Assembly (NCBI GenBank): GCA_010909165.1
Contig: VJWM01000117.1
Span: forward strand, 558,001 to 622,000
Direction: 5' to 3'
Length of the DNA: 64,000 bases
Source of the DNA: Anthoceros angustus
Lineage: Eukaryota; Plantae; Anthocerotophyta
The position numbers and the translations under genes are program-made. This document shows, piece after piece, positions 44,131-63,983 of this stretch (position 1 is the stretch's first letter; each line of letters opens with the position of its first letter). The notes beneath the pieces were generated by a model. That model saw nothing but the letters and a program-made list of their open reading frames with translations, did not search any database and was not told the origin of the DNA.

Positions 44131-47100
44131 TTATCCTGTACCACCAGGAGTGAAGTTTGATGGTTCAGCAACTGATTGGATTTCTTGTAGCAACCTTGCA
44201 ATCTCTGCATGTATGTCACGAATTTGGGGATGGGATATGTCCTTCGCCAGGAAGGAATGCGTCTCACAGTCCACTTGAATGCGACTCCACCCGGGGAGCT
44301 TCTTCACTTCCCTGTCCTTCATCAGCCTCCGGACTTCAACCCCGTCATCCCACCTTCCGGCCTCCGAGTAGAACTTGGCAATGAGCACATATGCAGAGGC
44401 ATCTTCTGGGTCGAGCTCCAAGATGCGCTCAGCAGCTCGCTGAGCGAGCTCTGCATCGCCGTGGATTCTACAGGCACCGAGCAGAGATGTCCACACGCAG
44501 GCGCCTGGCGGGGAAGGCAGCCCAGCGATGAAGTCTTCTGCATCATCCAGTCGCCCGGCTCGGCTGAACATGTCCACCATGCAACCGTAGTGCACGTCCT
44601 CCGGTACCACGCCATGTTCTTCCACCACCGATCTGAACACCTCTAGGCCTTCGTCCACCAGGCCCTGGTGGCTGCAGGCTGTCAGGATGTTGATGAATGT
44701 GATGCGATCCAGCTTCACGTTCTCTTGCACCATCTGCTCCAGAAGTCTGAGAGCCTCGGTGCCGCGGCCATGCTGCGCAAATGCCAAGATCATGGCATTC
44801 CATGTTGCAGTGTCTCGGGCATGGAGCTTGCCAAACACCTGGCAAGCATCCTCCAAGCTTCCAGCCTTGGCATACATGTCCACGAGCGCAGTGCCCACAA
44901 ACACATCCCTCTCCAGCTCGCTTTGAATGACGAGGTCGTGCACCTTCCTGCCCTGCTCCAGAGCAGGCATGCTTGCACATGCAGCGAGCAAGGACACAAA
45001 GGTGACTGCATTCGGCTTCACATCCTCCTGCAGCATCTGGGGCAACAGCTGCAAGGCCAGATCAGGCTGCCCACCTTCTGCGTACCCCTTGATCATGGCA
45101 CTGAAGGAAACCACATCACGTTTTGGCAGCATGTCCAGGACCTGGCGTGCATCACCTGTGACTCCACACTTGACGTACATGTCCACCAGAGCTGGTCCTA
45201 CCAGGGGATCCAACTCCAGCCCCCATCTCACCAGATCTGCATGGACTCGGCGGCCATCTTCGAGGGCAGCAGCACTGGCGCATACGTTCAGGACAGACGT
45301 GCAGATGACAGCGTCTGGCACCACCCTTTCCTGATGCATCAGATGGAAAAGCTGCAATGCTGCTTGAGCATTTCCTCCCTGAATGTAGCCATTGATCATG
45401 GCGCACCAGGCAACCACATCATGCTTCGGCAGCATGTCGAATTCCTGCCGGGCAAGATCGGTGCTCCCGCATTTCGCATACATGTGCACCAGGCAGGTGC
45501 CCACATACAGGTCCTTGTCTAGCCCACTCATCCTGATCCGGGTGTGCACCTGCTTGCCAAACTCCAGAGCTCCCAGACTGGCACAAGCATTGAGGAGACA
45601 GACAAATGTCACCTTGTCGGGTTCAACTCCTTCCTGATGCATTTGCTGAAACAGTTCCAGTGCCTCGAGAAACAGCCCTTGCTGAGAAAGACCTTTCATC
45701 ATGGCAGTGTAGAGGACAACACTTCGCTTACAAGTGGCCTCGAACAGCTGACATGCATCCTGTATGCTGCCACACTTGGCGTACATGTCGACTAAACTGT
45801 TCTGTACGAACTCGTCCGATTGGTATCCACATCGGAACACCACCTGGTGTATATCCCTGCCCTTCTCCAGGGCATTGACAGCAGCACAAGCATTCAATGC
45901 ACAAATACAGGTGACTTGGTTTGGCCTGATTCCAGATTTCTGCAACATGTCAAAGAGCTCCAGTGCTTCCTCACCATACCCATGTTGGGCATAGGCAGCT
46001 ATCATGGCATTCCAAGATACCACATTGCGCACATTCATATTGTCAAAGACTTTGCGGGCAGCACATACACTGCTGCACTTGGAGTACATGGTTACCAGAG
46101 CATTTCCCACAAAAGTGTCTGATTCACATCCGTGCCTCTTGATGAGATCGTGAATCTTTTCACCCTTCTCCACATCTGCTGAGCCACAACAGGCACTAAG
46201 CAAACAGACAAAGGTCGTTGCATCTGGGCTGATGCCTTCCTCACACATTTTTGTAAACAGCGTCAAAGCTTCGTCTGCACCTCTGCGGCTCTGGGAGAGA
46301 GCACCAATCATGGTATTCCAAGTGACCAGATTGCGCTTTGACATTTCATCAAAGACCTCACGTGCTGAGTCCAGGCTACCACACTTTGCATACTTGGCCA
46401 ACAAGCAATTCTTCACAGAGATGTTTGTATCGCATCGTGATGAGATAATGCACGAGTGAACTTCCTGCACATCTTGCAGGCGATGCGCACAGCGCAGCAC
46501 CTTGAGAAATGTAAAGGAATTAGGCTGAACGCCTCTGTGCACCATGCTTCTAAAAACTTCAAGAGCCTGTGCTGAAAGGCCCTGTTGCTCAAGCCCTGAT
46601 ATGATAGTATTCGAGGACACCAAACTTGGTTCAGGGATCTTTTGGAACAATTCAAGTGCATTATCCACGCATTCACCTTTGACATACATGGCAAGGAGAG
46701 CACTGCTTACAGTAGGATCCAACTCCAAGCCTCTGTCCGCAAGCAGAGCGTGAACTTGCCTCCCTCTCCCTAGGGCTTCTGGGGAAGCACATGCATTCAC
46801 CATAAGGAGAAACATAGAAGTGACGTCGGCTTTTGTACCGTGCATTTCCTTCAGTCCTTCAACAAGCTGAAGAGCCTTGTCCAAGTACCCATGATCAACA
46901 AATGATTTGATGAGAGGCGTCCATGAGAGCAAGCTTTTCTTTGTCATATCGTCAAACACCTGCTGCGCGTCAACCAGACTTCCACAGCTGGCGTACATCC
47001 TGATCAGAATATTCCCCAACAGGTCCATGTTCGAACCACTCCTGATCACATGTTTGTGCACTTGCTTGCCTTCTGCAAGAGCATTCTGTCTGATGCATTC

Positions 47101-47946
47101 CTGCAAAACACGCACATAGACATCGGTAGGACAGCAGTGGCCCCTTTCAGACATGGAATCCAAAACCAGCACAGCCTCCTTCAACTGCCCTCCTTCACAT
47201 AGCCTGGTAACATTCCTGCCCACCCTGCATATGCAAACTCAGGCTTCACACATCGCTACCAATCTCAACAGAACCACAAGCCCTCAGAAATCATACATTC
47301 CAGCCTTCTTCGTACCTCCAACACTCTGCAGCTGCTCCGGAAGCCAAATGGCTGCTGTCCTTCAAACCTTGGGATGACGTGGTATGTGCCTCAGGCATTG
47401 CATCTATCTTAGCTTGAACCCAACGAGGATTCCACCGGCTGTCAATCCACAGCACCTCGTTTGTTTCCTTGTGTCTGAAATCAGGATACCTGGGGTTATT
47501 CTGAAAGAAGAAGGATCAGCAGACTGCCCAACACTGCAACCGTGGCATTCTCCCAATCCAACATCAAGGCTTGAATACCTTCCGGGGTCTGTTATCCCAC
47601 CATAGGCTCGGATTCGAGAAGAAGCTTTTCCAGAGCTGTTCCCTCACCGCCACCTTATCTGCAACAACAAGCCCACATCCAAATGCGTGACAACTGCATC
47701 TCATTCCTCCACCAAAAGATCAACAAACACTATACACATACCGCCAGCCCCCATGCCCAGCTGCTGCTGCTGTGATGGATGGCAAGAAACAGCTTGATCC
47801 TGTCCCTCTGAGCCCCGATCAGCGAAGTAGAAGCGTGGGCTCATTGTTCTCCACCGGCTCAAGCCCGAGTGAGAGACTGCGGAAGATCGTGCCATCAGCT
47901 TTCCACTCCACCTCACAGAAGGGAAGAGGGAAGGAATCCAATTCAT
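44131..47946 (-). CDS. PLS-class PPR-E+ protein with an N-terminal OSB-type PDF motif; predicted exons 47946-47742, 47658-47579, 47500-47316, 47224-44131
   Basis: The 1030-aa PPR ORF begins at a splice acceptor (ATGCAG|G). Three GT-AG introns of 83, 78 and 91 bp with matching phases (1, 0, 2) join a transit-peptide-like exon and LWKSFFSNPSLWWDNRPRK|NNPRYPDFRHKETNEVLWIDSRWNPRWV in frame. C-terminus KKLPGWSRI...SHP, no DYW. Confidence 0.85.
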
Positions 47947-48467: not shown

Positions 48468-50487
48468 ATGGCGTCCCGTGCAGGCTGCACTCGGTTGCCT
48501 CTCCTCTTGCTGCTGCTGGTTCTGCTCACATTCAGTGCTCGCATCGCTGCTGCTTCTTCGGACTACGGTCGCTCGGAGCGTGAGGAGCGCGAGGAGCGCG
48601 AGGAGCGGCGGGAACGGGAGAAGGAACGGGAACGAGAGCGGGAACGGGAGCGACGAGAACCGGAGCATGAGCATGAACACGAGCACGAGCACGAGCACGA
48701 ACATGAAACAGAACCTGGGAGCAACGAGACATCCTCCAATCCCTTCATTCTGGACAGCCCCAAGGAGTTTGCCAGGACCCAGGCTGGCGTCCTCAGGGTG
48801 CTGCCCAGGCGGGCAGATGAAGAAGTGGCCACGCTGAAGGAGCTGGGTCTGGCGTTTCTGACCCTGGAGCCCAAAGGCTTGCTGCTGCCGCACTACCTGG
48901 ACGCTTCTGTGGTGTTGTACATCCAGAAAGGTGCATTCAGATGATCTCCGCCTTTGACAATCTCTACCTGCCTGTGGTCATCTGTGCCTGCTTATGACCA
49001 TCTCTGCTCTGTGACATCCATGGATGCAAGAGTGTGTCTGTTGTGTTTCTGTGGAGTGAGGTGGATGATGGTGTTTGTGGGAGCTCAGGGAGTGCGAGGG
49101 TTGGCTGGGTGGAGGACTACGAATACGTCCACAAAGACCTTGAGGCAGGAGATGTGTACACCCTAGAGGGAGGCACTGTCCATTACATCCTCAACACCGA
49201 CAAGGGCCTCAGGTTGCAGATCTTCTCTTTGATCGATGCCCGGCACAGCCTGACGCCTGGGCACTTCCAGGTAAAAAATTGCATGCTGCATTCTCCTCCC
49301 TCGCTTTCTGAAGGAAAGCGGTCGCTAGTAGTTGGTACCTGACTGCGTGGAGGAGCTAAGGATTGTGCATTTCTTGGGAATGGTGGTGCAGCCTTTCTTT
49401 GTGGCAGGAGGCTGGGATCCTGTGACCATCCTCTCTGGGTTCGATGCAGACGTGGTGGCAGCGGCATTGAAGGTAAGAGATGCTGCTCTTGTATGAACTG
49501 CATTGATGCCAAAGTTTAGGATCCTCACCCTGGTTGTTGCTGATCTCAGGTATCAAGGAGCGAGGTCGGGGATTTTCTGAATGCACAGAGCGCAGGTCCC
49601 ATAGTTTACACAACAGCCAGGGAAGCCAAGCGGGTAACCTCTGGAAAGAGGCCCAGCTTCTTCTCCCCTCAGCCTAACAGTCTGAAGTCCAGGAGCTGGT
49701 GGGACTGGTTCCAGCAGTCTGTGGGCCAGATTCCGCTGCTGGGTCGGACTCGGTCTGATGATGCCTTCAACCTGCTCAAGAAGAACCCTGACTTCAAGAA
49801 CAAGAACGGCTGGAGCACAACGGTGGATAGGTCTGAGTTTCCTCGTCTGAGGAAGCCCGATGTTGGGCTGTTTGCCGTCAGCTTGAAGGCGGTACGTAGT
49901 TGCTCTCCTCTGGATTTCTGACATGGATTGCAGCATGTAGGAATTGGAAACTGCTGAGGCCTGAGTGAGGAGGTGTATTGCTGCAGGGTTCGATGCTGGC
50001 GCCTCACTGGAATCCCAGGGCGACTGAGATAGCACTGGTGACCAGGGGCTATGGTTATGTGCACATAGCCTATCCCAACGGGACCAAAGCTCTTCACGAG
50101 AGGGTGGACGAAGGCACAGTCTTCGTGGTGCCTAGGTATCATCCGGTCTCGCAGGTGGCTTCCAGGGACGGCACTTTTGAGTTCGTGGGTTTCAGCACTT
50201 CTGCTCGCCGCAACAAGCCACAGTTCCTTGCAGGTGGGGCTCGCTGTCATTGCTGCTTGCAGTTTCAGGTGACGATGCTGCTGGCCTCTGACATCCAGCT
50301 TTTATGTACAGGTCGTAATTCGGTGTTGGCTATGCTGGAGAAGGAAAGCGACCATGATATTCTGCCTGTAGCATTCGATATAGACAGAGCCAGGTTAGAG
50401 GATTTCCTGGGAGCTCAGGACGACGATGTCATTTTGCCTGGATTTGTCGAGGAGGCAACTGTAAATCACAGGGTGTCTACTGAATAG
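48468..50487 (+). CDS. Vicilin-like (7S globulin) bicupin storage protein with (ER)n and (EH)n repeats; multi-exon
   Basis: Signal peptide; cupin 1 LTLEPKGLLLPHYLDA...GDVYTLEGGTVHYILN; ILSGFD..VVAAAL; cupin 2 SMLAPHWNPRATEIALVT.G.G...GTVFVVPRYHP; NKPQFLAG|RNSVL. Confidence 0.9.
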
Positions 50488-51124
50488 ATGAATACTGCTC
50501 ATCAGACGGCTACAGAATAGATGAATACGTGCAATATGCAAGTAGCTTCTGAGAAATTTTTGGACAGAACGAAAGTCTAATCCGGAAGGTTTTGTACTGT
50601 AAGCAAAGTGTACAAGCTTAAAGTTTTCAGTGAAAAGCGTCATATTTTTTGGTGTTAATTCCCTTCCAAACAGTTTGGTGTTAATTCCCTTCCAATACCT
50701 GGCATTCACAGAGCAGGTTAGATCATCACACTTGTTTAGGATTCACAGAGCATGGGAGTTCAGCACAATCCAAAGGTTTAGGGGCCAGTCTATTTGCTGC
50801 CATAGTATCTATCATGGTTCCCCAGAATGTGTGCACAAATGTCATACATTATTGTTTCATATCTAGATAAATAAAACTTATAAACCACTTTTATCAGATC
50901 CTGAGACTCTGAAGATTGAATACACTCGGCGGACACCTAATGGAGGTTAGCACATGAAGCTTCTCCTCCCATGGTTAGACCATGGATTTGGATCTCCTCC
51001 TCCCATGGTCCCGCAGGAGGAGGAGACCCAATCCCGTACCAGCAGGCTTCCCGGAAATTAGCCAGGGAACATCCAAGAGATACCAGAGGGAGAAACATCG
51101 CAGATCAGTCACCCCCTGCCGAAA

Positions 51125-54100
51125 ATGAAAAAATTTCAGGGAAGGGGGCGGCGGGAGTGGCCTTTATGGTGCAGGTTGGTAGGGTATGGAGAAGGGAGCC
51201 AACAATGTGAGGAGGGACTGCCTAGTGAAGCTGTCGAAGCGTTGAATCTGCTGTCTCGTCAGGGATCGTATATTCCAGCATCTCTCTTCCGAGAGGTCCT
51301 AAAGGGGTGTACCACAAAGAAGGAGTTGGATGTTGGAAGAAAGATCCATAGTCTTGTCGTATCAAGTGGGTATGAGTTAAACAGATTTTTAGCGAACCAC
51401 ACCATCTGCATGTATGCTTCTCATGGTAGGCTGACTGACGCGTTGGAGGTATTCGCCAAACTGGTTTCTCCAGATGCATACATGTGGTCATCCTTGATTT
51501 TAGCCCATGCCGAACACGGAGAACCTATGCAGGCAATAAAACTGTACTGGCAGATGCGTCAGTCAAGAATTACACCAGACGCTCATATATTTGTAGCTGT
51601 CCTTAAAGCATGTGCAAACGCAGCAGATTTGGCATCAGGCAGGGAGGTCCATGTTGATTTTCTGCGGACTGAACTTGATCCAAATGTGTTTGTTGGCAGC
51701 TGCCTGGTTGACATGTATGCAAAATGCGGGAGCCTAGATGATGCACGCAGAGTTTTTGACGACTTGGCCACAAAGAATGTGGTGACGTGGACTGCAATGC
51801 TTGCAGGATATGCTCAGCATGGGCTTGGGGAAGAAGCTCTTGCTCTTTATGCAAGTATGCAACAGGAAGGCATCACACCAGCTGACCAGGTTACGTTTGT
51901 TTGCCTCCTGAAAGCATGTGCTAGCATCAGAGCGTTAGACCTTGGCAAGCAGCTTCATTCCCAAGTTCAGGATAAAGGACTGGACGGTGATGTAGTTGTT
52001 GGTAGCTGCCTGGTGGACATGTATGCAAAATGTGGGAGCATAGCGGATGCCCGCAGGGTGTTTGATAATTTGCCCTCAAGAAATGTGGTGGCATGTACTG
52101 CTATGCTAGCAGGATATGCTCAGCTTGGGCTTGGCAAGGAAGCCCTTTCGCTTTATGCAGTTATGGAGCAGGAAAGGATGTTTCCAGCTGATTACGTTAC
52201 ATTCTTGTGCCTGCTGAAAGCATGTGCCAGCGCTGGTGCTCTACACCAGGGGAAGCAGCTCCATTCTGAGATTCAGGCAAGAGGACTGGAATCCAACGTG
52301 CTTGTCAGTAACTGTCTGGTGGACATGTATGCAAAATGCGGCAGCTTGGACGACGCCCGCAGGGTTTTTGACAATATGCTGACTAAAGATGGGGTGACAT
52401 GGACCTCGATGCTTTGTGGGTATGCTCAGCATGGTCTTGGTCAGGAAGTGCTGTCTCTTTATGCAGTCATGCAAAAAGAGGGCATCAATCCGACCGATCA
52501 TGTTGCATTTGTTTGCCTCCTGAAGGCTTGTGCAAGCGTTGGTGCATTGCATCAGGGTAAGCAGCTTCACTGTCAGATACAGAAAAGGGGGAGCTGACCT
52601 TGTTGTCAACAACTGCCTGGTGGCCATGTATGCAAAGTGTGGGAGTCTAGACGATGCCCGCAAGGTGTTTGATAGTATGAGCACAAGAGATGTGGTGACA
52701 TGGTCAGCCATGGTCACTGGATATTCTCAGTATGGGCTGGGGCAAGAGGCCCTGCAATGTTATGAGGCCATGCGACTGGCAGGAATTCATCCAGATGCGG
52801 TTACATTTGTGTCCCTTCTCACAGCTTGCAGTCATGCTGGCCTGGTCGAGAAAGGTCTGGAGTACTTCGAATCCATGAGCAAAGACTTTGGCGTGACTCC
52901 GGAAATTGAGCATTATGTGAGCATGGTAGACCTTTTCGGCCGCGCAGGAAACTTTTCAAAGGTAGAGCAGCTCTTGTCAGTGATGCCAATGCAGCCTGAC
53001 CTGGCCACATGGCTTTGCGTCCTAGGTGCCTGTCGGAAGCAGCTCCATTCTCAGATTCAGGCAAGAGGACTGGAATCCAACGTGTCAGTAACTGTCTGGT
53101 GGCATGTATGCAAAATGCGGCAGCTTGGACGACGCCCGCAGGGTTTTGACAATATGCTGACTAAGATGGGGTGACATGGACCTCGATGCTTTGTGGGTAT
53201 GCTCAGCATGGTCTTGGTCAGGAAGTGCTGTCTCTTTATGCAGTCATGCAAAAAGAGGGCATCAATCCGACCGATCATGTTGCATTTGTTTGCCTCCTGA
53301 AGGCTTGTGCAAGCGTTGGTGCATTGCATCAGGGTAAGCAGCTTCACTGTCAGATACAGAAAAGGGGGCTTGGAGCTGACCTTGTTGTCAACAACTGCCT
53401 GGTGGCCATGTATGCAAAGTGTGGGAGTCTAGACGATGCCCGCAAGGTGTTTGATAGTATGAGCACAAGAGATGTGGTGACATGGTCAGCCATGGTCACT
53501 GGATATTCTCAGTATGGGCTGGGGCAAGAGGCCCTGCAATGTTATGAGGCCATGCGACTGGCAGGAATTCATCCAGATGCGTTTGTGTCCCTTCTCACAG
53601 CTTGCAGTCATGCTGGCCTGGTCGAGAAAGGTCTGGAGTACTTCGAATCCATGAGCAAAGACTTTGGCGTGACTCCGGAAATTGAGCATTATGTGAGCAT
53701 GGTAGACCTTTTCGGCCGCGCAGGAAACTTTTCAAAGGTAGAGCAGCTCTTGTCAGTGATGCCAATGCAGCCTGACCTGGCCACATGGCTTTGCGTCCTA
53801 GGTGCCTGTCGGAAGCATGGCAACATAGCCCTGGCAGAACGTGTTTTTGATTGTGCCTTACGTCTGCAGCCCAAGGATGCTGCAGCATATGTTTTGATGT
53901 CACACATCTATGCCGATGCTGGCCTCTTTGACCGAGCAAGGGCACTATTCAAGTGCAGAAGGAGGGAAGGTGTCTGCAAGGAACCTGGCTGGAGCTGGAT
54001 TGAGGTCGAGCAGGAAGCGCACACATTCTTCGTAGGAGACCGTAAGCACCCTGAACATGAGGAAGTACATGGCATTTTAGATAAGGTAACCTTATTGCTG

Positions 54101-54145
54101 AGGCAAACTGGGAATACATCATGGTCTCATAATATGCCCGCTTAG
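51125..54145 (+). CDS. PLS-class PPR-E+ gene (no DYW), broken in this assembly by an internal ~785-bp duplication and small deletions
   Basis: ORF pieces 51125-52597, 52530-53174 and 53171-54145 hold PLS triplets. The gene ends KEPGWSWIE...VGDRKHPE. Confidence 0.8.
52255..53817 (+). repeat. Tandem duplication of ~785 bp inside the PPR gene (52255-53039 / 53040-53817)
   Basis: The copies are nearly identical and differ mainly by small deletions. The junction has GGAAGCA microhomology (GGGAAGCAGCTCC vs CGGAAGCATGG). Confidence 0.85.
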
Positions 54146-54249: not shown

Positions 54250-54690
54250 TTCCCCGGATGCACCTGAAGAATTGCATCTCGGCAGGCAGCTACATACTGA
54301 GATTGACGGACAAGGGCTTGATGCCGACATTTGTGTAACCGGCAGCTTGATACACAGGTACTCCCAGCAGGTCATGAGCTAGGAGGCCCTACATCTTCAG
54401 ACTGCTCTGCAACACGAAGCCTTGTCTGTACCCGACTCTCTGACGTTTGTCTGCCTCCTGCAGGCCTGTGCGAGTGTGAGTTCCCTGGCCTCCGATAAGG
54501 GGATGCACCACCTCACACGGACTAGAGAAAGAGGACTCCAGACGGATGTGTTTACTACAAACAGTTTGGTGAATATGTATGCAAAGTGTGCAGGCTGCTT
54601 GGAGTACGCTGAAAGAGTGTTTGATCCGCTTCCTCAAAAGAGATGCAGTGACAGGGAATTCAATGATAACAGGGTACAGTACACCTCTTG
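54250..54690 (+). pseudogene. PPR gene fragment
   Basis: LHLGRQLH.EI...GLDAD, PDSLTFVCLLQACAS and VFTTNSLVNMYAKC, with stops and frameshifts and no intact triplets. Confidence 0.7.
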
Positions 54691-54800
54691 ACCATAACAG
54701 AGACAATCAGGATCGAATGAATGTCTCTCGTTCTGGAATAAAAGAAGCGAGGTATCAGTTTCTCTGTCCAAAACGTCGAAACCTTCACGATTTATTCTCT

Positions 54801-54835
54801 GGGTACCTACCCAATAAAAAATCGTCTCCACTATG
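54801..54835 (+). promoter_or_regulatory. Upstream block conserved in all three GRP-PPR copies (also ~58112 and ~61266); candidate core promoter
   Basis: GGTACC...(A/T)A(T/A)AAA...(TCT/ATG)C(C)ACTA lies 120-140 bp before each ATG; copy C has TATAAAT. Function is inferred. Confidence 0.3.
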
Positions 54836-54921
54836 CTTCAGGTTGGTGATGTCATACAAAGGACCTGGGCATCCCGCCACAGTTTCTTGTGGGCTCATGT
54901 TCCGACTGCGGTACCTGAACG

Positions 54922-57844
54922 ATGGCCGTAGTATGGCAATCGGACCCGTTGAGGACCCAACAAATTGGTGTGTGTACAGGAACTCTACTAGGAGCTCCCG
55001 CGCACCTCACTTTACGGAGTCAACCTCTGGCAAACGATGTCTCCAGGAGCAGCAGTGTAAGGAGCCCAGCACTTCCGCTTCTGACAGAAATTGTGGGTAG
55101 GGACGGGTTTTCCAGCAATGATCGTCGCCAGGAGCAGGAGCACTTGTGGCAACAATTTTTTCTGGAGCCTACCATGTGGTGGGACAACAGACGAGATAAG
55201 ATGAGCCCCCGCTCCCCTGACTTCCGGCGTAAGGGGTCCGGCGAGGTCCTGTGGTTAAACAGCATGTTTAAGCCAGCTTGGGTTGATGAACAGCTGGTGT
55301 CCTTGGATGTACAGATGGGTCATGGTGCCTCTCCTTCCGGTCAGCTCTCCGGATAAGCCTGAACCTGGCAGGTGCAGCAGTGTAAGGGCCCAGCACTTCC
55401 ACTTCGAGAAATTGTGGTGGGGACGGGTTTTCCAGCGATGGTCGTCGCCAGGAGCAGGAGCACTTGTGGCAACAATTTTTCTGGACCCTACCATGTGGTG
55501 GGACAACAGACGAGATAAGAAGAGCTCCCGTTCGCCTGACTTCCGGCGTAAGGGGTCCGGCGAGGTCCTGTGGTTAAACAGCATGTTTAAGCCAGCTTGG
55601 GTTGATGAACAGCTGGTGTCCTTGGATGTACAGATGGGTTTTTGGTCCTCTCCTTCCGGGTCGAGCTCTCCGGATAACCATGAACCTGGGGGACGGGCAG
55701 GATCGGGAATGGGCGTCATAACTGCTGGAACCGTGAGCATGTTATGTCAGCAGGGGAAGCTTTCGGAGGCCGTTGGAGTCTTAGAATCTCTGGCGCAGAC
55801 AGACTCTGCCATTTCTCAGTCTCTGTTTTACACTGTGCTGAAGCTGTGTACAGCTAAGAAGGATTTGGTCGCGGGGCGACGAGTTCATGATCTCACTGTC
55901 AAACTTGGGTACAATTCGAATGCATACTTGGGGAACCATATCTTGCGCATGTATGCATCTGGAGGTAGGCTGCAGGAGGCCACGGATGTGCTCACCAGGG
56001 TAGGCAAACCAAATGCCTTCATGTGGTTTTCCTTAATTTCTGCACATGCTAAGAATGGGAAACCTACTGAGGCCATACAACTGTACCATGAAATGCGCAG
56101 GTCAGGAGTGAAGGCAGATGCTCACGTCTTTGTAGCTGCCCTTCAAGCTTGTGCTTTGGCCGCCGACTTGGAATCTGGCAGAAAAGTGCACTGTGATGTA
56201 TTGCACAGTGGTATTCCTCTTAACCTGTTTGTTGGCTCCTCCCTGGTGGACATGTATGCAAAATGTGGTGAATTGGAAGATGCACGCCAGGTATTTGACA
56301 GCATGGAGACAAAGAATGTGGTGATATGGAATGCCGTGATAGCTGGGTATGCCCAGCAAGGGCTCGGACATGAGGCGCTTGTTCTATATGGCCAAATGGA
56401 GCAGGAGGGCCTCATTTTGCCTGACCGTGTTACCTTTGCTTGCCTTCTGAAAGCCTGTGCAAGCACTGGTGCCTTACAAAAGGGCAGGCAGCTGCACTCA
56501 CAGATTGTCGAAAGAGGATTGCTACATGATATCCTGGTGGGCACCTGTCTGGTGGACATGTATGGAAAATGCGGTGAAATGAATGATGCACGCAAGGTTT
56601 TTGAAAGCTTGGCCACAAAAGATGTGGTGACATGGAATGCCCTGATAGCTGGACATGTACAGCAAGGACTCGGCCAGGAAGCGCTCGTTCTGTATGGGGA
56701 AATGGAGCAAGAGGGCGGGCTTGTGGCTAACGATGTTACTTTAACTTCCCTTCTAAAGGCCTGTGGGAGCACTGGTGCCTTACAGAAGGGCAGGCAGCTG
56801 CACTCACGGATTGTCGAAAGAGGACTGCTGAACAATGTAGTGTTGGGCAACTGCCTGGTGGACATGTATGCAAAATGTGGTAAACTGGAAGCTGCACGCC
56901 AGGTTTTTGACAGCTTGGCCTCAAAGGATGTGGTGACATGGACCGCCCTGATATCTGGGTATGGTGCGTGTGATGAAGGTCACAAGGCACTAGCTTGTTT
57001 TGAGGAGATGTTAGTTGCCGGTGTTCAGCCTAATGATGCAACTTTTACTTGCCTTTTTGTAGCATGCAGTCATGAGGGACTGGTCCAAGAGGGTCGCAAA
57101 CACTTTGATTCCATGGCTAAACAGCATGGCATCAGACCTACTACTGAGCATTACAATTGCATGATTGATCTTCTTGGGCGTGCAGGGCATTTAGATGAAG
57201 CTGAGAAGATGCTATTGACCTGCGAGGGCCAAAGTAATGTTGTGGGCTTGAGGTCGTTGTTGAATTCCTGCAAAAGTCACGGGGATCTAGGGAGGGCGAT
57301 GTGGTGTTTCGAAAGGATTGTCAAGCTGGACCCCCAGGAGGCGCCCGCATATGTACTCATGGCCAATGCCTATGCAGATGCAGGTAGATGGACCGATGTA
57401 GCCAGGATTGAAACACAGAGAAGGGCAGCAGGAGCTAACAAGAAACCTGCAGTGGCGACCATTGAGGTGAAGGAGCAGGTACATACATTTCTGGTGGGAG
57501 AAAGAAGAGAGGATATTGCGCTTAAGATAGAGAGCACGAATGCGCGTATGAAGGAGGAAGGAGGACATATACCTCACACAAAGTTGGTGTTGAAGCCATT
57601 GCGGGAGAAGGAAAAGGAAGATGTGCTTTGTGGGCATGCTGAGAAGCTAGCTCTGGCGTTTGGTCTCTTGCACACTCCGAGTGGGACACCTCTGGTGGTA
57701 ACGAAGAATCTACGCATGTGTAGTGACTGCCACAGTTCCACGGAGATCATGTCAAGGATTGAACAGAGAGACATTGTTGTAAGGGATGGGTACCGTGTGC
57801 ATAGATTCGCAAACGGTTGTTGCAGTTGTAAGGGTCGACCCTGA
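54922..57844 (+). CDS. Copy A: PDF-PDF-PPR(PLS)-E-DYW:KP (GRP-type) candidate U-to-C RNA editing factor
   Basis: ORF 54922-55356 (PDF1) and ORF 55283-57844 (PDF2 plus PPRs in frame). KKPAVATIEV replaces the PG box; GHAEKLA, KNLRMCSDCH, terminal CSCKGRP. A small indel separates the two ORFs. Confidence 0.85.
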
Positions 57845-58235
57845 GAATAATGAAGAACCAGCCAGTGCTGAAGGGTGTACGCCAGAAATTTTTGCTTTTC
57901 TTCTTGGAGGTGCATGCGCTTGCTTCGGGGTGAAGGCGCTTGCTAAACTCCACAACATGATGAATCTCATCCAGACGTAACACATAATGTTTCGCTGAGT
58001 CTTTGTCATAATCTGACAACTGGTAGACATAGATCATGGATCTCCTGTCTCTCTGAAGAGAGCCGATAACAGAACAAATATCAGTTTCTGTACAGATTCT
58101 CTGTCTTTTCTGGGTACCCACTAAAAAACCATATGCACTATCCTACAAGGTGGTGTGTGCTCAGAGCATCCTGCCATCACGGGCCGCCCAGCCCATCTGC
58201 ACTGTGACCTAGTTCACGATTGCGGTCCCTGAACG

Positions 58236-61071
58236 ATGGCCACAGTATGGCAAGGACCCGTTGTGGACCCAACAAATTGGTGTGTACAGGGATTCAGAGA
58301 GCTCCGCTCACCTCAGGGAGTCAACCCACCAACCAAGCCAGGTGCAGCAGTGGAAGAGCCCAGCCACTTCCGAGAAAATATGTGGTGGGGACGGATTTTC
58401 CAGCGATGGTCGTCGCCAGGAGCAGGAGCACTTGTGGCAACAATTTTTCTGGACCCTACCATGTGGTGGGACAACAGACGAGATAAGAAGAGCTCCCGTT
58501 CGCCTGACTTCCGGCGTAAGGGTCCGGCGAGGTCCTGTGGTTAAACAGCATGTTTAAGCCAGCTTGGGTTGATGAGCAGCTCGTTTCCTTGGATATGCAG
58601 ATGGGTCATGGTGCCTCCTTCCAAGTCGAGCTCTCCGGATAAGCCTGAACCTGGGGCGCAGGATCGGAATGGGCGTCGTAACGGCTGGAACCGTGAGCAT
58701 GTTATGTCAGCAGGGAAGCTTTCTGAGGCCGTTGGAGCCTTGGAATCTCTGGCGCAGGTAGATTCTGCTATATCTCAGTCTCTATTTTGCACTGTGCTAA
58801 AACTGTGTACAGCTAAGGGGGATTTGGTTGTGGGGCGCCGAGTTCATGATCTCTGTGTCAAACTTGGATACGAGTCGAATGCTTACTTGGGGAACCATAT
58901 CTTGCGAATGTATGCATCTGGATGTAGGCTACAGGAGGCCATGGATGTGTTCACCAGAGTAGGCAAACCAGATGTTTTCATGTGGTCTTCCATCATCTCT
59001 GCATATGCTAAGCATGGGAAACCTAAGGAGGCCATGCAACTGTACCATGAGATGCGTAGGTCAGGTGAAGGCGGATGCTCACGTCTATAGCTGCCTTCAA
59101 GCTTGTGCATTTGGCCGACTTGGAATCTGGCAGAAAAGTGCACTGTGATGTGTTGCACAGTGGCATTCCTGACTTGTTTGTTGGCAACTGCCTGGTGGAC
59201 ATGTATGCAAAATGTGGTGAACTGAAGATGCACGCCAGGTTTTGACAGCTTGGCCACAAGGATGTGTGACATGGAAACCCTGATTGCTGGGTATGCACAG
59301 CAAGGACTCGCCAAGAGGCGCTTGTTGTGTATGGACAAATGGAGCAGGAGGGCCTGATTTTGGCTAATCAACATTTGCTTGCCTTCTGAAGGCCTGTGCA
59401 AGCTGGTGCCTTACAGAAGGGCAGGCAGCTGCACTCACAGATTGTCGAAAGAGGACTGCTGGATGAGTGCTGGCACTGCCTGGTGGACATGTATGCAAAA
59501 TGTGGTGAACTGGAAGATGCACGCCAGGTTTTTGACAGCATGGCCACAAGGATGTGGTGACATGGAATGCCCTGATTGCTGGGTATGCACAGCAAGGGCT
59601 CACATGAGGCGCTTGTCTGTATGGACAAATGGAGCAGGAGGGCCTGATTTTGGCTGACCATGTTACTTTTGCTTGCCTTCTGAAGGCCTGTGCAAGCACT
59701 GGTGCCTTACAGAAGGGCAGGCAGCTGCACTCACAGATTGTCGAAAGAGGACTGCTGATATAGTGTGGCAACTGCCTGGTGGACATGTATGCAAAATGTG
59801 GTGAACTGGAAGATGCACGCCAGGTTTTTGACAGCATGGCCACAAAGGATGTGGTGACATGGAATGCCCTGATTGCTGGGTATGCACAGCAAGGACTCGG
59901 CCAAGAGGCGCTTGTTCTGTATGGACAAATGGAGCAAGAGGGCCTCCTTTTGGCTGACCATGTTACTTTTGCTTGCCTTCTGAAGGCCTGTGCAAGCACT
60001 GGTGCCTTACAGAAGGGCAGGCAGCTGCACTCACAGATTGTGGAAAGAGGACTGCTGGATAACGTTGTGTTGGGCAACTGCCTGGTGGACATGTATGCAA
60101 AATGTGGTGAACTGGAAGATGCACGCCAGGTTTTTGACAGCATGGCCACAAAGGATGTGGTTACCTGGAATGCCCTGATATCTGGGTATGGTGCTTGTGA
60201 TGATGGTCACAAGGCACTAGCTTGTTTTGAGGAGATGTTAGTTGCCGGTGTTCAGCCTAATGATGCTACTTTTACTTGCCTTTTAGTAGCATGCAGTCAT
60301 GAGGGACTGGTCCACGAGGGTCGCAAGCACTTTGATTCCATGGCTGAACAACATGGCATCAAACCTACTCTTGAGCATTACAATTGCATGATTGATCTTC
60401 TTGGGCGTGCAGGCCACGTAGATGAGGCAGAGAAGATGCTATTGTCATGTGAGGGCTCAAGTAATGTTGTGGGCTTGACATCTTTGTTGAATGCCTGCAA
60501 AAGTCACGGGGATGTAGAGAGGGCGATGTGGTGTTTTGAAAGCATTGTAAGGCTAGACCCTCAAAGGGCGTCTGCGTATGTGCTCATGGCCAATGCCTAC
60601 GCAGATGCAGGCAGGTGGGCTGATGTAGACAGGATTGAAACACAGAGAATGGTAGCAGGAGCTAACAAGAAACCTGCAGTGGCGACCATTGAGGTGAAGA
60701 AGCAGGTACATAGTTTTTCGGTGGGAGAAAGAAGAGATGATCTTGCGCTCAAGATGGAGAGCACGAATGCCCGTCTGAAGGAGGAAGGAGGCCATGTACC
60801 CCATACAAAGTTGGTGTTGAAGCCATTGTGTGAGAAAGAAAAGGAAGATGCGCTTTGTGGGCATGCTGAGAAGCTGGCTCTGGCGTTTGGTCTCTTGAAC
60901 ACTCCAAGTGGGACACCACTGGTGGTAACGAAGAATCTACGCATGTGCAGTGACTGCCACAGTTCCACGGAGATCATGTCAAGGATTGAACAGAGAGACA
61001 TTGTTGTAAGGGATGGGTACCGTGTGCATCGATTCGCAAATGGTTGTTGCAGTTGTAAGGGTAGACCGTGA
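58236..61071 (+). CDS. Copy B: PDF-PPR-E-DYW:KP (GRP), one extra PLS triplet; 5' half has many small deletions (pseudogene or assembly error)
   Basis: PDF WWDNRRDKKSSRSPDFRRK at ~58465-58520. Intact 430-aa 3' ORF 59779-61071 with HAEKLA/CSDC/GRP. The GGGCAGGCAGCTGCAC triplet marker occurs three times (~59418, 59716, 60015) versus twice in A and C. Confidence 0.75.
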
Positions 61072-61406
61072 GAACAATGAACGACTAGCCAGTGCTCAAG
61101 TGTGTACTCCAGAGAAAACAAGCAAAACTGAGAGTCTGACGTCTGTGGAACCTAGGTAATGAAATCCAATGAATCTATCTCTGGAATGAAGAAATTCTAG
61201 AGTGATTTAAATCTAAGTGCGGTTCATCAGTCGGTGACCAAAACTTTGTAATCTGTTTCTTGGTCGGTACCCAGTATAAATCTGTCTCCACTAACCTTCA
61301 GCATGGTGTGGTCGTACACTCTCATATACAGTCCCTTCGCTTTATGTGCTGCCTTTCAGTATGTAGTCTGTTGTTGGACTCATCTTCCGACAGCGGTCCC
61401 TGAACG

Positions 61407-63983
61407 ATGTCCACAGTATGGCAACCGGAACCGTTGTGGACCCAACAAAATGGTGTGTGCACAGGGAGTCTTCGGGGTGCTCCCGCCCACCTCACTGTAG
61501 GGAGTCAACCCCTTGCAAACGAAGCCTCCAGCTGGAGCAGTGGAAGGAGCCCAGCACTTCCACTTCCGACCAAATGTGTGGGTGGGTACTTGTTTCCCAG
61601 CGATGGTCGTCGCCAGGAGCAGGAGCACTGGTCGCAACAATTTTTCCTGGAACCTACCATGGGGTGGGACAACAGAGGAGATGAGCAGAGCTCCCGTTCG
61701 CTTGACACCCAGCGTAGGGGTTCCAGCGAGGTCCTGTGGTTAAACAACACGTTTAAGCCAGCTTGGGTTGATGAGGAGCTCGTATCCTTGGATACGCAGA
61801 TGGGTCATGGTGCGTATCCTTCTAAGTCGAGGTCTCCGGATAAGCCTGAACCTGGCAGGCGTGCAGGATCGGAAGAGGGCGTCATAACGGCTGAGACCGT
61901 GAGCATGTTATGTCAGCAGGGGAAGCTGTCTGAGGCCGTTGGAGCCCTGGAATCTCTGGCGCAGATAGACTCTGCTATTTCTCAGTCTCTGTTGTACACT
62001 GTGATAAAACTGTGTACAGCTAGAAAGAACATGGTTGTGGGGCGACGAGTTCATAACCTCACTGTGAAACTTGGGTACGAGTCGAATGCCTACCTGGGGA
62101 ACCATATCTTGCGCATGTATGCAGGTGGAGGTAGGCTGCAGGAGGCCATGGATGTGTTCACCAGGGTAGGGAAACCAAATGCCTTCATGTGGTTTTCCAT
62201 GATTTCTGCATATGCTAAGCATGGGAAGCCTAATGAGGCCATACAACTGTACCATAAGATCCGTAGGTCAGGAGTGATCGCGGATGCTCACGTCTTTGTA
62301 GCTGCCCTTCAAGCTTGTGCATTGGCCGCCGACTTGGAATCTGGCAGAAAAGTGCATTGTGATATATTGGACAGTGGCATTCCTATAAATCTGTTTGTTG
62401 GCACCTGCCTCGTAGACATGTATGCGAAATGTGGTGACTTGAAAGATGCACGCCAGGTTTTTGACAACATGGCGACAAAGAATGTGGTGATATGGAATGC
62501 CTTAATAGCTGGGTATGCACAGCAAGGGCTTAGCCATGAGGCACTTGTTGTGTACGGACAAATGGAGGAGGAGGGCCTGATTGTAGCTAACCAAGTTACT
62601 TTTGCTTGCCTTCTGAAAGCCTGTGCAAGCTCTGGTGCCTTACAGAAGGGCAGGCAGCTGCACTCTCAGATTGTTGAAAGAGGACTTATGGATGACATAC
62701 TGGTGGGCACCTGCCTGGTGGACATGTATGCAAAATGTGGTGAACTGGAAGATGCACGCCAGGTTTTTGACATATCCACAAAGGATGTGGTGACATGGAA
62801 TGCCCTGATATCTGGGTATGCACAGCAAGGACTCGGCCAAGAGGCACTTCTTCTGTATGAACAAATGGAGCAAGAGGCCCTCGTTTTGGCTGACGATGTT
62901 ACTTTTGTGTTTCTGAAGGCCTGCCTGTGCACTGGTGCCTTACAGAAGGGCAGGCAGCTGCACTGAGATTGTGGAGGACTGCTGGATAACATCGTGTTGG
63001 GCAACTGCCTGGTGGACATGTATGCAAAATGTGGTGAACTGGAATGACCAGGTTTTTGACAGCTTAACAAAGGATGTGGTGACATGGAATGCCCTGATAT
63101 CTGGGTATGGTACTTGTGATGATGGTCATAGAGCAATAGCTTGTTTTGAGGACATGTTAGTTGCCGGCATTCAGCCTGATGATGTTACTTTTACTTGCCT
63201 TCTAGTAGCATGCAGCCATGAGGGACTAGTCCAGGAGGGTCGCAAGCACTTTGATTCCATGGCTGAACAGCATGGCATCAAACCCACTTTTGAGCATTAC
63301 ATTTGCATGATTGACCTTCTTGGGCGTGCAGGGCATTTAGATGAGGCAGAGAAGATGCTCTTATCATGTGAGGGCCAAAGTAACGTTGTGGGCTTGACGG
63401 TGTTTTTAAATGCCTGCAAAAGTCATGGGGATCTAGGGAGGGCGAAGTGGTGTTTTGAAAGCATTGTGAGGCTGGACCCTCAGTGGGCGTCTGCGTATGT
63501 GCTCATGGCCAATGCCTACGCAGATGCAGGTAGGTGGACCGATGCAGAGAGGATTGAAATACAGAGAATGGTAGCAGGAGCCAATAAGAAACCTGCAGTG
63601 GCCACCATTGAGGTGAACGAGCAGGTTCATAGATTTCTGGTGGGTGAAAGACGAGAGGATATTGCACTTAAGGTAGCAAGCACAAATTCACGTCTGAAGC
63701 AGGAAGGAGGCCACGTACCTCTCACAAAGTTGGTGTTGAAGCCACTGGGTGAGAAGGAAAAGGAAGATGTGGGCATGCTGAGAAACTAGCTTTGGCTTTC
63801 GGTCTGTTGAACACTCCGAGTGGGACACCTCTAGTGGTGACGAAGAATCTACGCATGTGCGGTGATTGCCACAGTTCCACGGAGGTCATGTCAAGGCTTG
63901 AACAGAGAGACATTGTTGTAAGGGATGGGTACCGCGTCCATCGGTTCGCAAATGGTTGTTGCAGTTGTAAGGGTCGACCTTAG
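61407..63983 (+). CDS. Copy C: degenerate-PDF-PPR-E-DYW:KP (GRP); frameshifts near 62770, 62900-62965, ~63045 and a 7-bp deletion just before HAE
   Basis: 519-aa ORF runs from the ATG through QQFFLEPTMGWDNRGDEQSSRSLDTQRRGSSEVLWL into PLS repeats. The later pieces carry KKPAVATIEV and end KNLRMCGDCH...CSCKGRP*. Confidence 0.75.

Follow-up and report, generated by a model that had tools for sequence, protein, structure and literature searches.

Why does a run of genes for PPR RNA-editing factors in the hornwort Anthoceros angustus begin with a motif of the kind known from organellar DNA-binding OSB proteins? A PPR editing factor is commonly portrayed as a PPR tract followed by E and DYW domains, with helper functions attributed to separate proteins that are known chiefly from seed plants. 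An earlier note on this locus, based on sequence alone, had recognised the OSB-type PDF motif at four places in three tandem genes, which it read as PDF-PPR editors. Here, we analyse the three genes (copies A, B and C) and a fourth, gene D, within a window of 64,000 nucleotides of contig VJWM01000117.1, and relate them to proteins of other land plants.

The motif as an OSB-type PDF domain

The PDF signature spans about 50 residues (LW..FF..P..WWDNR..K..P..PDFKHK....LW....P.WV). An HMM built only from the PDF motifs of eight proteins with a Pfam SSB domain (the OSB-only HMM) was scored on six-frame pieces of the window and recovered the motif at all four places, with E values from 6e-24 to 8e-10. 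Outside the three tandem copies and gene D, no piece of the window scored better than E 0.6. There is also a weak match (E 0.038) within the leader of copy A, in a different frame. In the reverse direction, a profile of the window motifs matched 831 proteins at E<=1e-3 in an exhaustive HMMER search; 46 proteins with a Pfam SSB domain stand among the best 150 of these, and an OSB3-like protein was matched at E 1e-57.

The AF2 model of the complete domain of copy A (A1; pLDDT 95, pTM 0.81) predicts a compact fold of helix, short strands and helix, with conserved Trp/Phe and Arg/Lys. Compared with the AlphaFold models of Swiss-Prot, it matched only OSB1-4, in each case at PDF motifs (TM 0.71-0.88, both sides being predicted); the best match was to OSB1 residues 181-243 (TM 0.88, 44% identity). 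Judged by profile and predicted fold, the window motif of about 55 residues is a true homologue of the OSB PDF domain, as the earlier note had held. Among PDB structures no analogue of the fold was found (none by Foldseek; best VIA-align Z 4.1), so there is no mechanistic lead from that side. The second motif of copy A alone returned no matches in a word-indexed protein search, which reflects the word index and not absence, and the A1 ORF met only chance-level phage clusters in the ESM Atlas (score <=0.79).

OSB proteins, described in 2006, act on organellar DNA and carry one to five PDFs C-terminal to an SSB-like OB fold (reviewed in PMC6963530 and PMC4166229). The window copies share with them the signature (HMM E 6e-24), the predicted fold and the near-invariant residues. 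They differ in that the PDF is N-terminal and the remainder is a PPR RNA-editing factor; no Pfam SSB domain, and thus no OB fold, was found in the copy A ORF, the A1 ORF, or copies B and C.

A selected editor frame with a rearranged 5' end

Copy A opens on the forward strand with a 144-codon ORF (54922..55356) that runs from the ancestral ATG through a presequence and a complete PDF to a stop. This PDF (A1, 55138-55308) scores E 5.8e-24 and 80.9 bits with the OSB-only HMM and keeps 13 of 13 near-invariant residues, but its ORF, ending at the stop at 55356, differs in frame from the PPR array of copy A. The separate ORF is the product of an internal tandem duplication of about 320 bp, with a first unit at approximately 55047-55373 and a second at 55374..55690 (forward strand). 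It appears in a three-way alignment as a 319-321-nt insertion in copy A relative to copies B and C, and the sequence was also read directly.

The second PDF (A2, 55469-55627, forward strand) occupies the PPR-array frame, lacks the first helix (LWxxFF), and matches the OSB-only HMM at E 5.5e-20 over profile positions 5-56 only. Its in-frame translation reads ...GAGALVATIFLDPTMWW. The earlier note had placed the whole of A2 in the array frame, which holds from FLDPTMWW onwards; the preceding seven residues, HLWQQFF, belong to another frame because a T run is 1 nt shorter. The same T-run change is present in copy B.

The long ORF of 853 codons (55286..57844, forward strand; the frame opens at 55283 and its first ATG is at 55286) encodes a PLS PPR array, an E motif and a DYW:KP domain of the GRP type. 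Pfam matches are to PPR (8.5e-73), E_motif (1.2e-13) and DYW_deaminase (2.3e-33), and a motif scan places KPAVA at 57443-57457, HAEK at 57635 and the CSCKGRP end at 57821-57841. The zinc centre CSDCH, together with KPAVA, HAEK and CSCKGRP, is found in copies A and B and, across shifted frames, in copy C. These features (with Pfam DYW_deaminase at 2e-33) bear out the assignment of the C-terminal domains to the GRP-type DYW:KP class, whose hornwort members are candidate U-to-C factors with, as in the copies here, a PLS array, E motif, KPAxA, HAE...CxxCH and a C-terminal GRP. The subtype was defined together with the designer proteins KP2 and KP3 (PMC9478123); the published descriptions consulted mention no N-terminal PDF, and the designer versions function without one (PMC9478123).

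Compared with copies B and C, the PPR-DYW:KP frame of copy A shows dN/dS of about 0.25. Copy A keeps an open, selected PPR-DYW:KP frame, but its 5' end is rearranged and its in-frame PDF is truncated, and loss of the PDF has apparently been tolerated. We do not propose that splicing connects A1 to the PPR frame: the 319-321-nt unit is not cleanly divisible by three, and no joint in support of it was observed. The read layout over copy A is swamped by paralogous contigs, which number in the thousands, and therefore gives no usable evidence on transcripts, start sites or the T run. For one run, X1 (flagged 'RNA?'), exact contigs lie at 54653-55147, 56492-56614 and 57817-57957, and depth is similarly low in the flanks.

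Decayed neighbours

Copy B (58236..61071, forward strand) is a pseudogene whose PDF lies across two frames, in pieces at 58437-58520 (OSB-only HMM E 2.2e-10) and 58523-58594 (E 1.7e-6). Relative to copy A it carries about twenty indels of 1-3 nt in the 5' half and 288 nt of additional PPR repeats, while its 3' 430 codons, including the DYW:KP domain, remain open, and Pfam on the 3' half agrees with copy A. Copy C (61407..63983, forward strand) is likewise a pseudogene. Its degenerate PDF (61629-61793; OSB-only HMM E 7.5e-10) has lost five of 13 near-invariant residues. A single frame runs from the ATG through this PDF into the PPR array, as the earlier note had described; after 519 codons it is broken by 2-, 4-, 5- and 7-nt indels, leaving the DYW:KP end in a different frame.

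Both are recent pseudogenes, and no copy at the locus joins a complete PDF to an intact editor. Because the copies are damaged, the locus is a poor experimental example.

A spliced PDF-PPR gene on the opposite strand

Gene D (44131..47946, reverse strand) is a four-exon PPR gene separate from the triplet, established from the sequence with a phase check and Pfam. Exon 1 spans 47946-47742 and exon 4 spans 47224-44131; between them, exons 47658-47579 and 47500-47316 each encode part of the PDF (OSB-only HMM E 9.5e-8 and 1.3e-14), separated by a phase-0 GT-AG intron that follows WWDNRPRK. All exon phases match exactly. The product of exon 4 has a PLS array, a PG box and the motifs E and E+, but lacks a DYW domain.

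Distribution and origin of the pairing

The fusion that the earlier note had suspected is real: two relatives of copy A, P0136 (locus L001) and P0187, have an uninterrupted PDF-PPR-DYW:KP ORF. Both are intact GRP-type proteins that end in GGRP and share 53-58% identity with copy A. Several close KP relatives have no PDF in their called proteins.

One search returned 105 PPR proteins with one to three N-terminal PDFs. The lycophyte Diphasiastrum complanatum carries the PDF on about 100 of its PPR genes, and the domain is also present in proteins of Sphagnum spp., Ceratodon purpureus and Adiantum spp. These proteins combine a presequence, one to three PDFs and a PLS array and are annotated as hypothetical or PPR proteins. 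These moss, lycophyte and fern genes have spliced 5' exons and share the phase-0 PDF intron of gene D, and they end mostly in a PG-type DYW domain or in E/E+; the tandem copies of the window, in contrast, are intronless, KP-type and partly broken. In the searches made here, PDF-PPR proteins were found only in seedless plants.

Among the 105 proteins, 41 have a PG-type DYW domain, 63 are without DYW and one has a KP box without the catalytic HxE. These counts, with the PDF on the E+-type gene D, speak against the earlier suggestion that the motif is tied to U-to-C editing. Comparison of the sequences indicates instead that the pairing is widespread in seedless plants and independent of the type of C-terminal domain. 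The further suggestion that the PDF makes up for a short PPR array also fails, as carriers reach 1,200-1,400 aa.

In PPR-linked PDFs, 12.7 of 13 near-invariant residues are conserved, the same number as in the non-PPR (mostly OSB-type) sequences. The phase-0 intron lies at the same position within the PDF in moss, lycophyte and gene D, and this common position points to an ancient pairing with a single early origin; the intron was absent from the one angiosperm OSB gene compared. In a tree of 142 PDF motifs, those linked to PPR group together (8 label changes, compared with 28 in shuffles), but the motifs are too short to settle origins, and the tree is compatible with a single one. Tandem arrays of 1-13 PDFs are found, on scaffolds that include the SSB fold, PPR proteins and perhaps kinesin. 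Its presence on PPR proteins shows the PDF to be a mobile domain and not an OSB-specific motif. A literature search found no paper that describes the PDF-PPR architecture, in line with the earlier note's surmise; it is not reported in a recent OSB survey that required OB fold plus PDF (PMC13393729) or in a recent survey of editing-factor domain fusions (PMC13386178).

Possible roles of the PDF domain

The locus is a tandem triplet of intronless PLS-PPR/E/DYW:KP editing-factor genes of the GRP type. The likeliest role for an intact PDF, which we consider somewhat probable, is that of an accessory grip on single-stranded nucleic acid in cis. Each copy descends from an ancestor with a presequence, PDF and linker ahead of the PPR array and a deaminase-like domain. 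In appearance, the intronless KP copies derive from a spliced, retroposed transcript that was later duplicated in tandem. This design is now decaying at the locus, through truncation of the in-frame PDF in copy A and pseudogenisation of copies B and C. From its N-terminal position relative to the PPR tract, we infer that an intact domain would sit on RNA 5' of the PPR footprint, where a sequence-independent grip would raise affinity or hold upstream RNA unfolded, and so influence editing. Designer GRP proteins without a PDF carry out U-to-C editing in E. coli (PMC9478123), and the PDF is therefore dispensable for catalysis. Against the RNA grip stand the state of the locus, where a complete in-frame PDF is missing from every copy and copy A apparently copes without one, and the biochemistry of the OSBs.

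Recombinant OSB1 and OSB2 prefer ssDNA to RNA (PMC4166229), and two reviews attribute ssDNA binding to the PDF motifs (PMC4166229, PMC6963530). With the near-invariant residues retained in PPR-linked PDFs, this favours the idea preferred by the earlier note, that the domain keeps its ssDNA preference and anchors the editor to nucleoids, at transcription bubbles, R-loops or replication intermediates, for editing on nascent RNA. We regard such a tether as rather unlikely, given that PPR proteins bind single-stranded RNA and the PDF adjoins that RNA-binding tract; the present results are compatible with either DNA or RNA binding.

A broader version of the cis grip, which we put forward as doubtful, makes the PDF an ancestral built-in helper of land-plant PLS-PPR editors. 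Such a clamp would either lengthen the RNA footprint on the upstream side of the PPR tract or link editing to nascent transcripts and organellar DNA. A large fraction of the PLS genes of mosses, lycophytes, ferns and hornworts would have retained it, whereas it would have been lost in seed plants, where MORF proteins took over in trans. As accessory aids to target binding by PLS-PPR proteins, the MORF/RIP proteins of seed-plant editosomes offer a speculative functional analogy. They have no sequence or fold relation to the PDF, and they act in trans in seed plants, whereas the PDF would act in cis and was found here in seedless plants.

The occurrence of 1-13 tandem copies on unrelated scaffolds, the tetrameric state of AtOSB2 (PMC6963530) and the restriction of PDF-PPR proteins to seedless plants in these searches would also suit a protein-protein module, a MORF-like helper that oligomerises or recruits OSBs, other PDF-PPR proteins or editosome parts. 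We think this improbable, as nucleic-acid binding is the sole activity reported experimentally for the motif and its conserved surface is aromatic and basic. Even less convincing is a functionless passenger, captured once and spread with retroposed PPR genes, for which decay is the normal fate. Copy A, with its selected PPR-DYW frame and truncated PDF, the five lost residues of copy C and the close KP relatives called without a PDF fit such a history. Yet a neutral segment of 55 residues would hardly survive intact across such divergence, with 12.7 of 13 residues kept across mosses, lycophytes, ferns and A. angustus, on about 100 genes of one lycophyte, and with a conserved intron position. 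Finally, the short A1 ORF and the error-prone nature of homopolymer differences might suggest that the motif is part of a different gene lying upstream, or an artefact of assembly. This is barely credible and largely refuted by ORFs that run on from PDF to PPR in P0136, P0187, copy C (519 codons) and many independently annotated genomes, by the T-run change common to copy B and A2, and by the matching exon phases of gene D.

Implications for editing in seedless plants

If more than 100 seedless-plant PPR proteins carry a conserved nucleic-acid-binding domain, the early editing machinery would have had a component that has so far gone unrecognised. The PDF offers a handle on the affinity and specificity of PPR proteins that work without MORFs and, for the engineering of C-to-U and U-to-C editors, its addition or removal would be a simple design variable.

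The leader motif is an OSB PDF domain

The motif that opens the three tandem PPR-DYW:KP genes (copies A, B, and C) is the PDF domain, a stretch of about 55 residues that, in OSB organellar ssDNA-binding proteins, lies C-terminal to an SSB-like OB fold. The earlier note had assigned it to this class and recommended an HMM comparison, which bears the assignment out. A profile built solely from the PDF motifs of eight OSB-type proteins with a Pfam SSB domain (the OSB-only HMM) was run on six-frame pieces of the window and matched the first motif of copy A (A1; 55138-55308) at E 5.8e-24, the second (A2; 55469-55627) at E 5.5e-20, the copy B motif in two frames at E 2.2e-10 and 1.7e-6, and the copy C motif at E 7.5e-10. 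Across the six frames of the whole window, there was no match better than E 0.6 outside copies A-C and gene D, a separate PDF-PPR gene on the minus strand; one weak match (E 0.038) falls inside the copy A leader in another frame. In the reverse direction, a profile made solely from the window motifs was searched against 1.84 billion representatives and retrieved 831 proteins (E<=1e-3). Pfam SSB is present in 46 of the best 150 of these, and an SSB-bearing match at E 1e-57 is annotated as 'protein OSB3, chloroplastic/mitochondrial-like' (Chenopodium quinoa).

Predicted structure is consistent with this identity. For the A1 motif (window 55120-55320), AlphaFold2 run on a 142-row alignment predicts, with very high confidence, a helix, short strands, and a second helix (pLDDT 95, pTM 0.81). 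Within the Swiss-Prot AlphaFold set this model matches nothing but Arabidopsis OSB1, OSB2, OSB3, and OSB4, each falling on the PDF motif with TM 0.88-0.71 (predicted versus predicted). Among solved structures, Foldseek returned no similar fold and the best VIA-align Z was 4.1. On this modeling, the PDF is predicted to be a small, confidently folding domain without an experimental structure.

Several other proteins recovered by the searches carry the domain in other settings. Five of them (P0001-P0004 and P0007) consist almost wholly of PDF repeats, with as many as 13 stretches along 1,160 aa, and have no other credible domain, P0002 showing weak, sub-stretch Pfam matches only; Orobanche proteins from a Diphasiastrum-seeded search appear to resemble them. 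A Coptis chinensis protein (P0036, KAF9616283.1) places three N-terminal PDF motifs before a kinesin motor domain and may be a merged model of adjacent genes.

The tandem locus is decaying

The region 54922-63983 holds one gene in three head-to-tail copies that align at 86-88% DNA identity. The Pfam matches in copy A cover an array of PLS-class PPRs, the E motif, and a deaminase domain of the DYW type (DYW_deaminase, 2.3e-33), and a motif scan finds the KP signature, with KPAVA replacing the PG box, then HAEK, CSDCH, and GRP at the C-terminus. GRP is one of two hornwort DYW:KP subtypes (PMC9478123). A hornwort source for the window is therefore probable.

The earlier note placed the motif in all three genes, in frame with the PPR array at A2 and in copy C. 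It is indeed present in all three, but A2 is only partly in frame, and B and C are pseudogenes. The open frame of copy A spans 55283-57844 on the plus strand (853 codons, first ATG at 55286), and its 5' end is broken up by an internal tandem duplication of about 320 bp. The first unit, also on the plus strand, runs from the ancestral ATG at 54922 to a stop at 55356 and codes for a presequence followed by a complete PDF (A1), with 13/13 near-invariant residues present. A2 shares the frame of the PPR array from FLDPTMWW onward only; the preceding HLWQQFF, the first-helix core with a near-invariant Trp, is out of frame because a T run is 1 base shorter. This change is common to copy B and A2, and is thus a real mutation rather than a random assembly slip. 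The 5' half of copy B carries about twenty 1-3-nt indels, one of them within the PDF. Copy C is indeed open from the ATG, across a degenerate PDF that has lost 5/13 key residues, into the PPR array, but for 519 codons only, after which 2-, 4-, 5-, and 7-nt indels break the frame.

Over the PPR-E-DYW part, dN/dS is about 0.25 for copy A against B or C, which argues for purifying selection on this family during the greater part of its existence; copies B and C seem to have been inactivated recently. The locus is, in short, a decaying example of the PDF-PPR architecture. Thousands of contigs from four public runs, paralogous and 93-99% identical to copy A with the PDF region included, map to 54800-57900, so the copy A family and its PDF leader are highly multicopy in related genomes and transcriptomes.

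Two neighboring plus-strand regions were also noted. A further PLS PPR gene or gene pair at 51125-54145 lacks a PDF, has a PG box and a truncated end, and contains an internal repeat (a block at about 52530-53174 similar to 53171-54145); it looks rearranged or pseudogenised. An ORF at 48468-50490, with no relation to the PPR cluster, begins like a signal peptide and contains an extended acidic run of ER/EH dipeptide repeats; it is followed by ORFs that, by eye, resemble cupins or vicilins.

Distribution and origin of the PDF-PPR architecture

The same window provides a second case. Gene D (47946-44131, minus strand) has four exons with all phases consistent and encodes a presequence, a canonical PDF split by a phase-0 GT-AG intron after WWDNRPRK, and a PLS array of 1,030 codons closed by E and E+ motifs; it has a PG box but lacks DYW.

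The closest intact relatives of copy A found, P0187 (58% identity) and P0136 (53%), each combine a single N-terminal PDF with a KP box and a GGRP end, and P0136 reads without a break as one ORF within a genomic contig of 9 kb. One to three N-terminal PDFs occur in 22/120 strong PLS relatives, from Diphasiastrum complanatum, Adiantum capillus-veneris, A. nelumboides, and metagenomic or transcriptomic sequences; none of the seed-plant proteins in this list has one. A second search, started from the PDF region of a Diphasiastrum protein, yielded 177 long proteins, of which 118 were examined. The OSB-only HMM matches every one of the 118, and 105 of them are PPR proteins, with no seed-plant match among these. 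About 100 of the PPR proteins are from Diphasiastrum, with others from five species of Sphagnum and from Ceratodon purpureus; no liverwort example was seen in our searches. The special link to U-to-C editors drawn in the earlier note is not supported, since the PDF also sits on gene D, an E+ protein, and the 105 comprise 41 PG-type DYW proteins, 63 without DYW, and a single protein with a KP box that lacks the catalytic HxE.

A phase-0 intron within the PDF occupies the same place in gene D, both PDFs of one Diphasiastrum gene, and one Sphagnum gene, which points to one early PDF-PPR fusion before these lineages split. It was not found in the four PDF exons of the one angiosperm gene checked, a Chenopodium OSB3-like gene. 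The KP copies of the window and P0136 have none of these introns and keep the exon order, which fits an origin in which a spliced mRNA would have been retroposed, giving intronless KP copies, and then tandemly duplicated. PPR expansions have been ascribed mainly to retroposition-associated dispersed duplication (PMC13386178, a 2026 survey).

Putative role and significance

Near-invariant residues are retained equally in PPR-linked PDFs (12.7/13) and in non-PPR, mostly OSB-type, rows (12.7/13), and judging from this conservation the PPR-linked PDF probably has the same biochemical job as its OSB counterpart. In PLS editing factors, the N-terminal repeats touch the 5' end of the cis-element, so an N-terminal PDF would lie on the RNA upstream of the PPR footprint. 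We prefer to read it as a putative accessory, sequence-independent single-strand grip on that upstream RNA, which would add affinity or hold the RNA unfolded. The main rival is that the PDF would tether the editing factor to single-stranded organellar DNA. According to two reviews, the PDF motifs account for ssDNA binding by OSBs and are sufficient for it in OSB1, and OSB1 and OSB2 bind ssDNA in preference to dsDNA or RNA (PMC6963530, PMC4166229); this reported preference favors such a tether. Less likely are a protein-interaction module and a functionless passenger. Whether as an RNA grip or otherwise, the PDF would be at most a modulator of editing factors, because designer GRP proteins achieve U-to-C editing in E. 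coli without it (PMC9478123) and the frame of copy A has stayed under selection alongside a truncated PDF.

The earlier note knew of no prior description of this architecture, and in the openly accessible literature we likewise found none that joins PDF or OSB to PPR, DYW, PLS, or editing factors. A survey of OSBs from 2026 was restricted to proteins that combine an OB fold with a PDF (PMC13393729), and a kingdom-wide study of domain fusions in editing factors, also from 2026, makes no mention of either PDF or OSB (PMC13386178). The PDF-PPR architecture is real, old, and not confined to U-to-C editors, and it should matter to those who study RNA editing in organelles.
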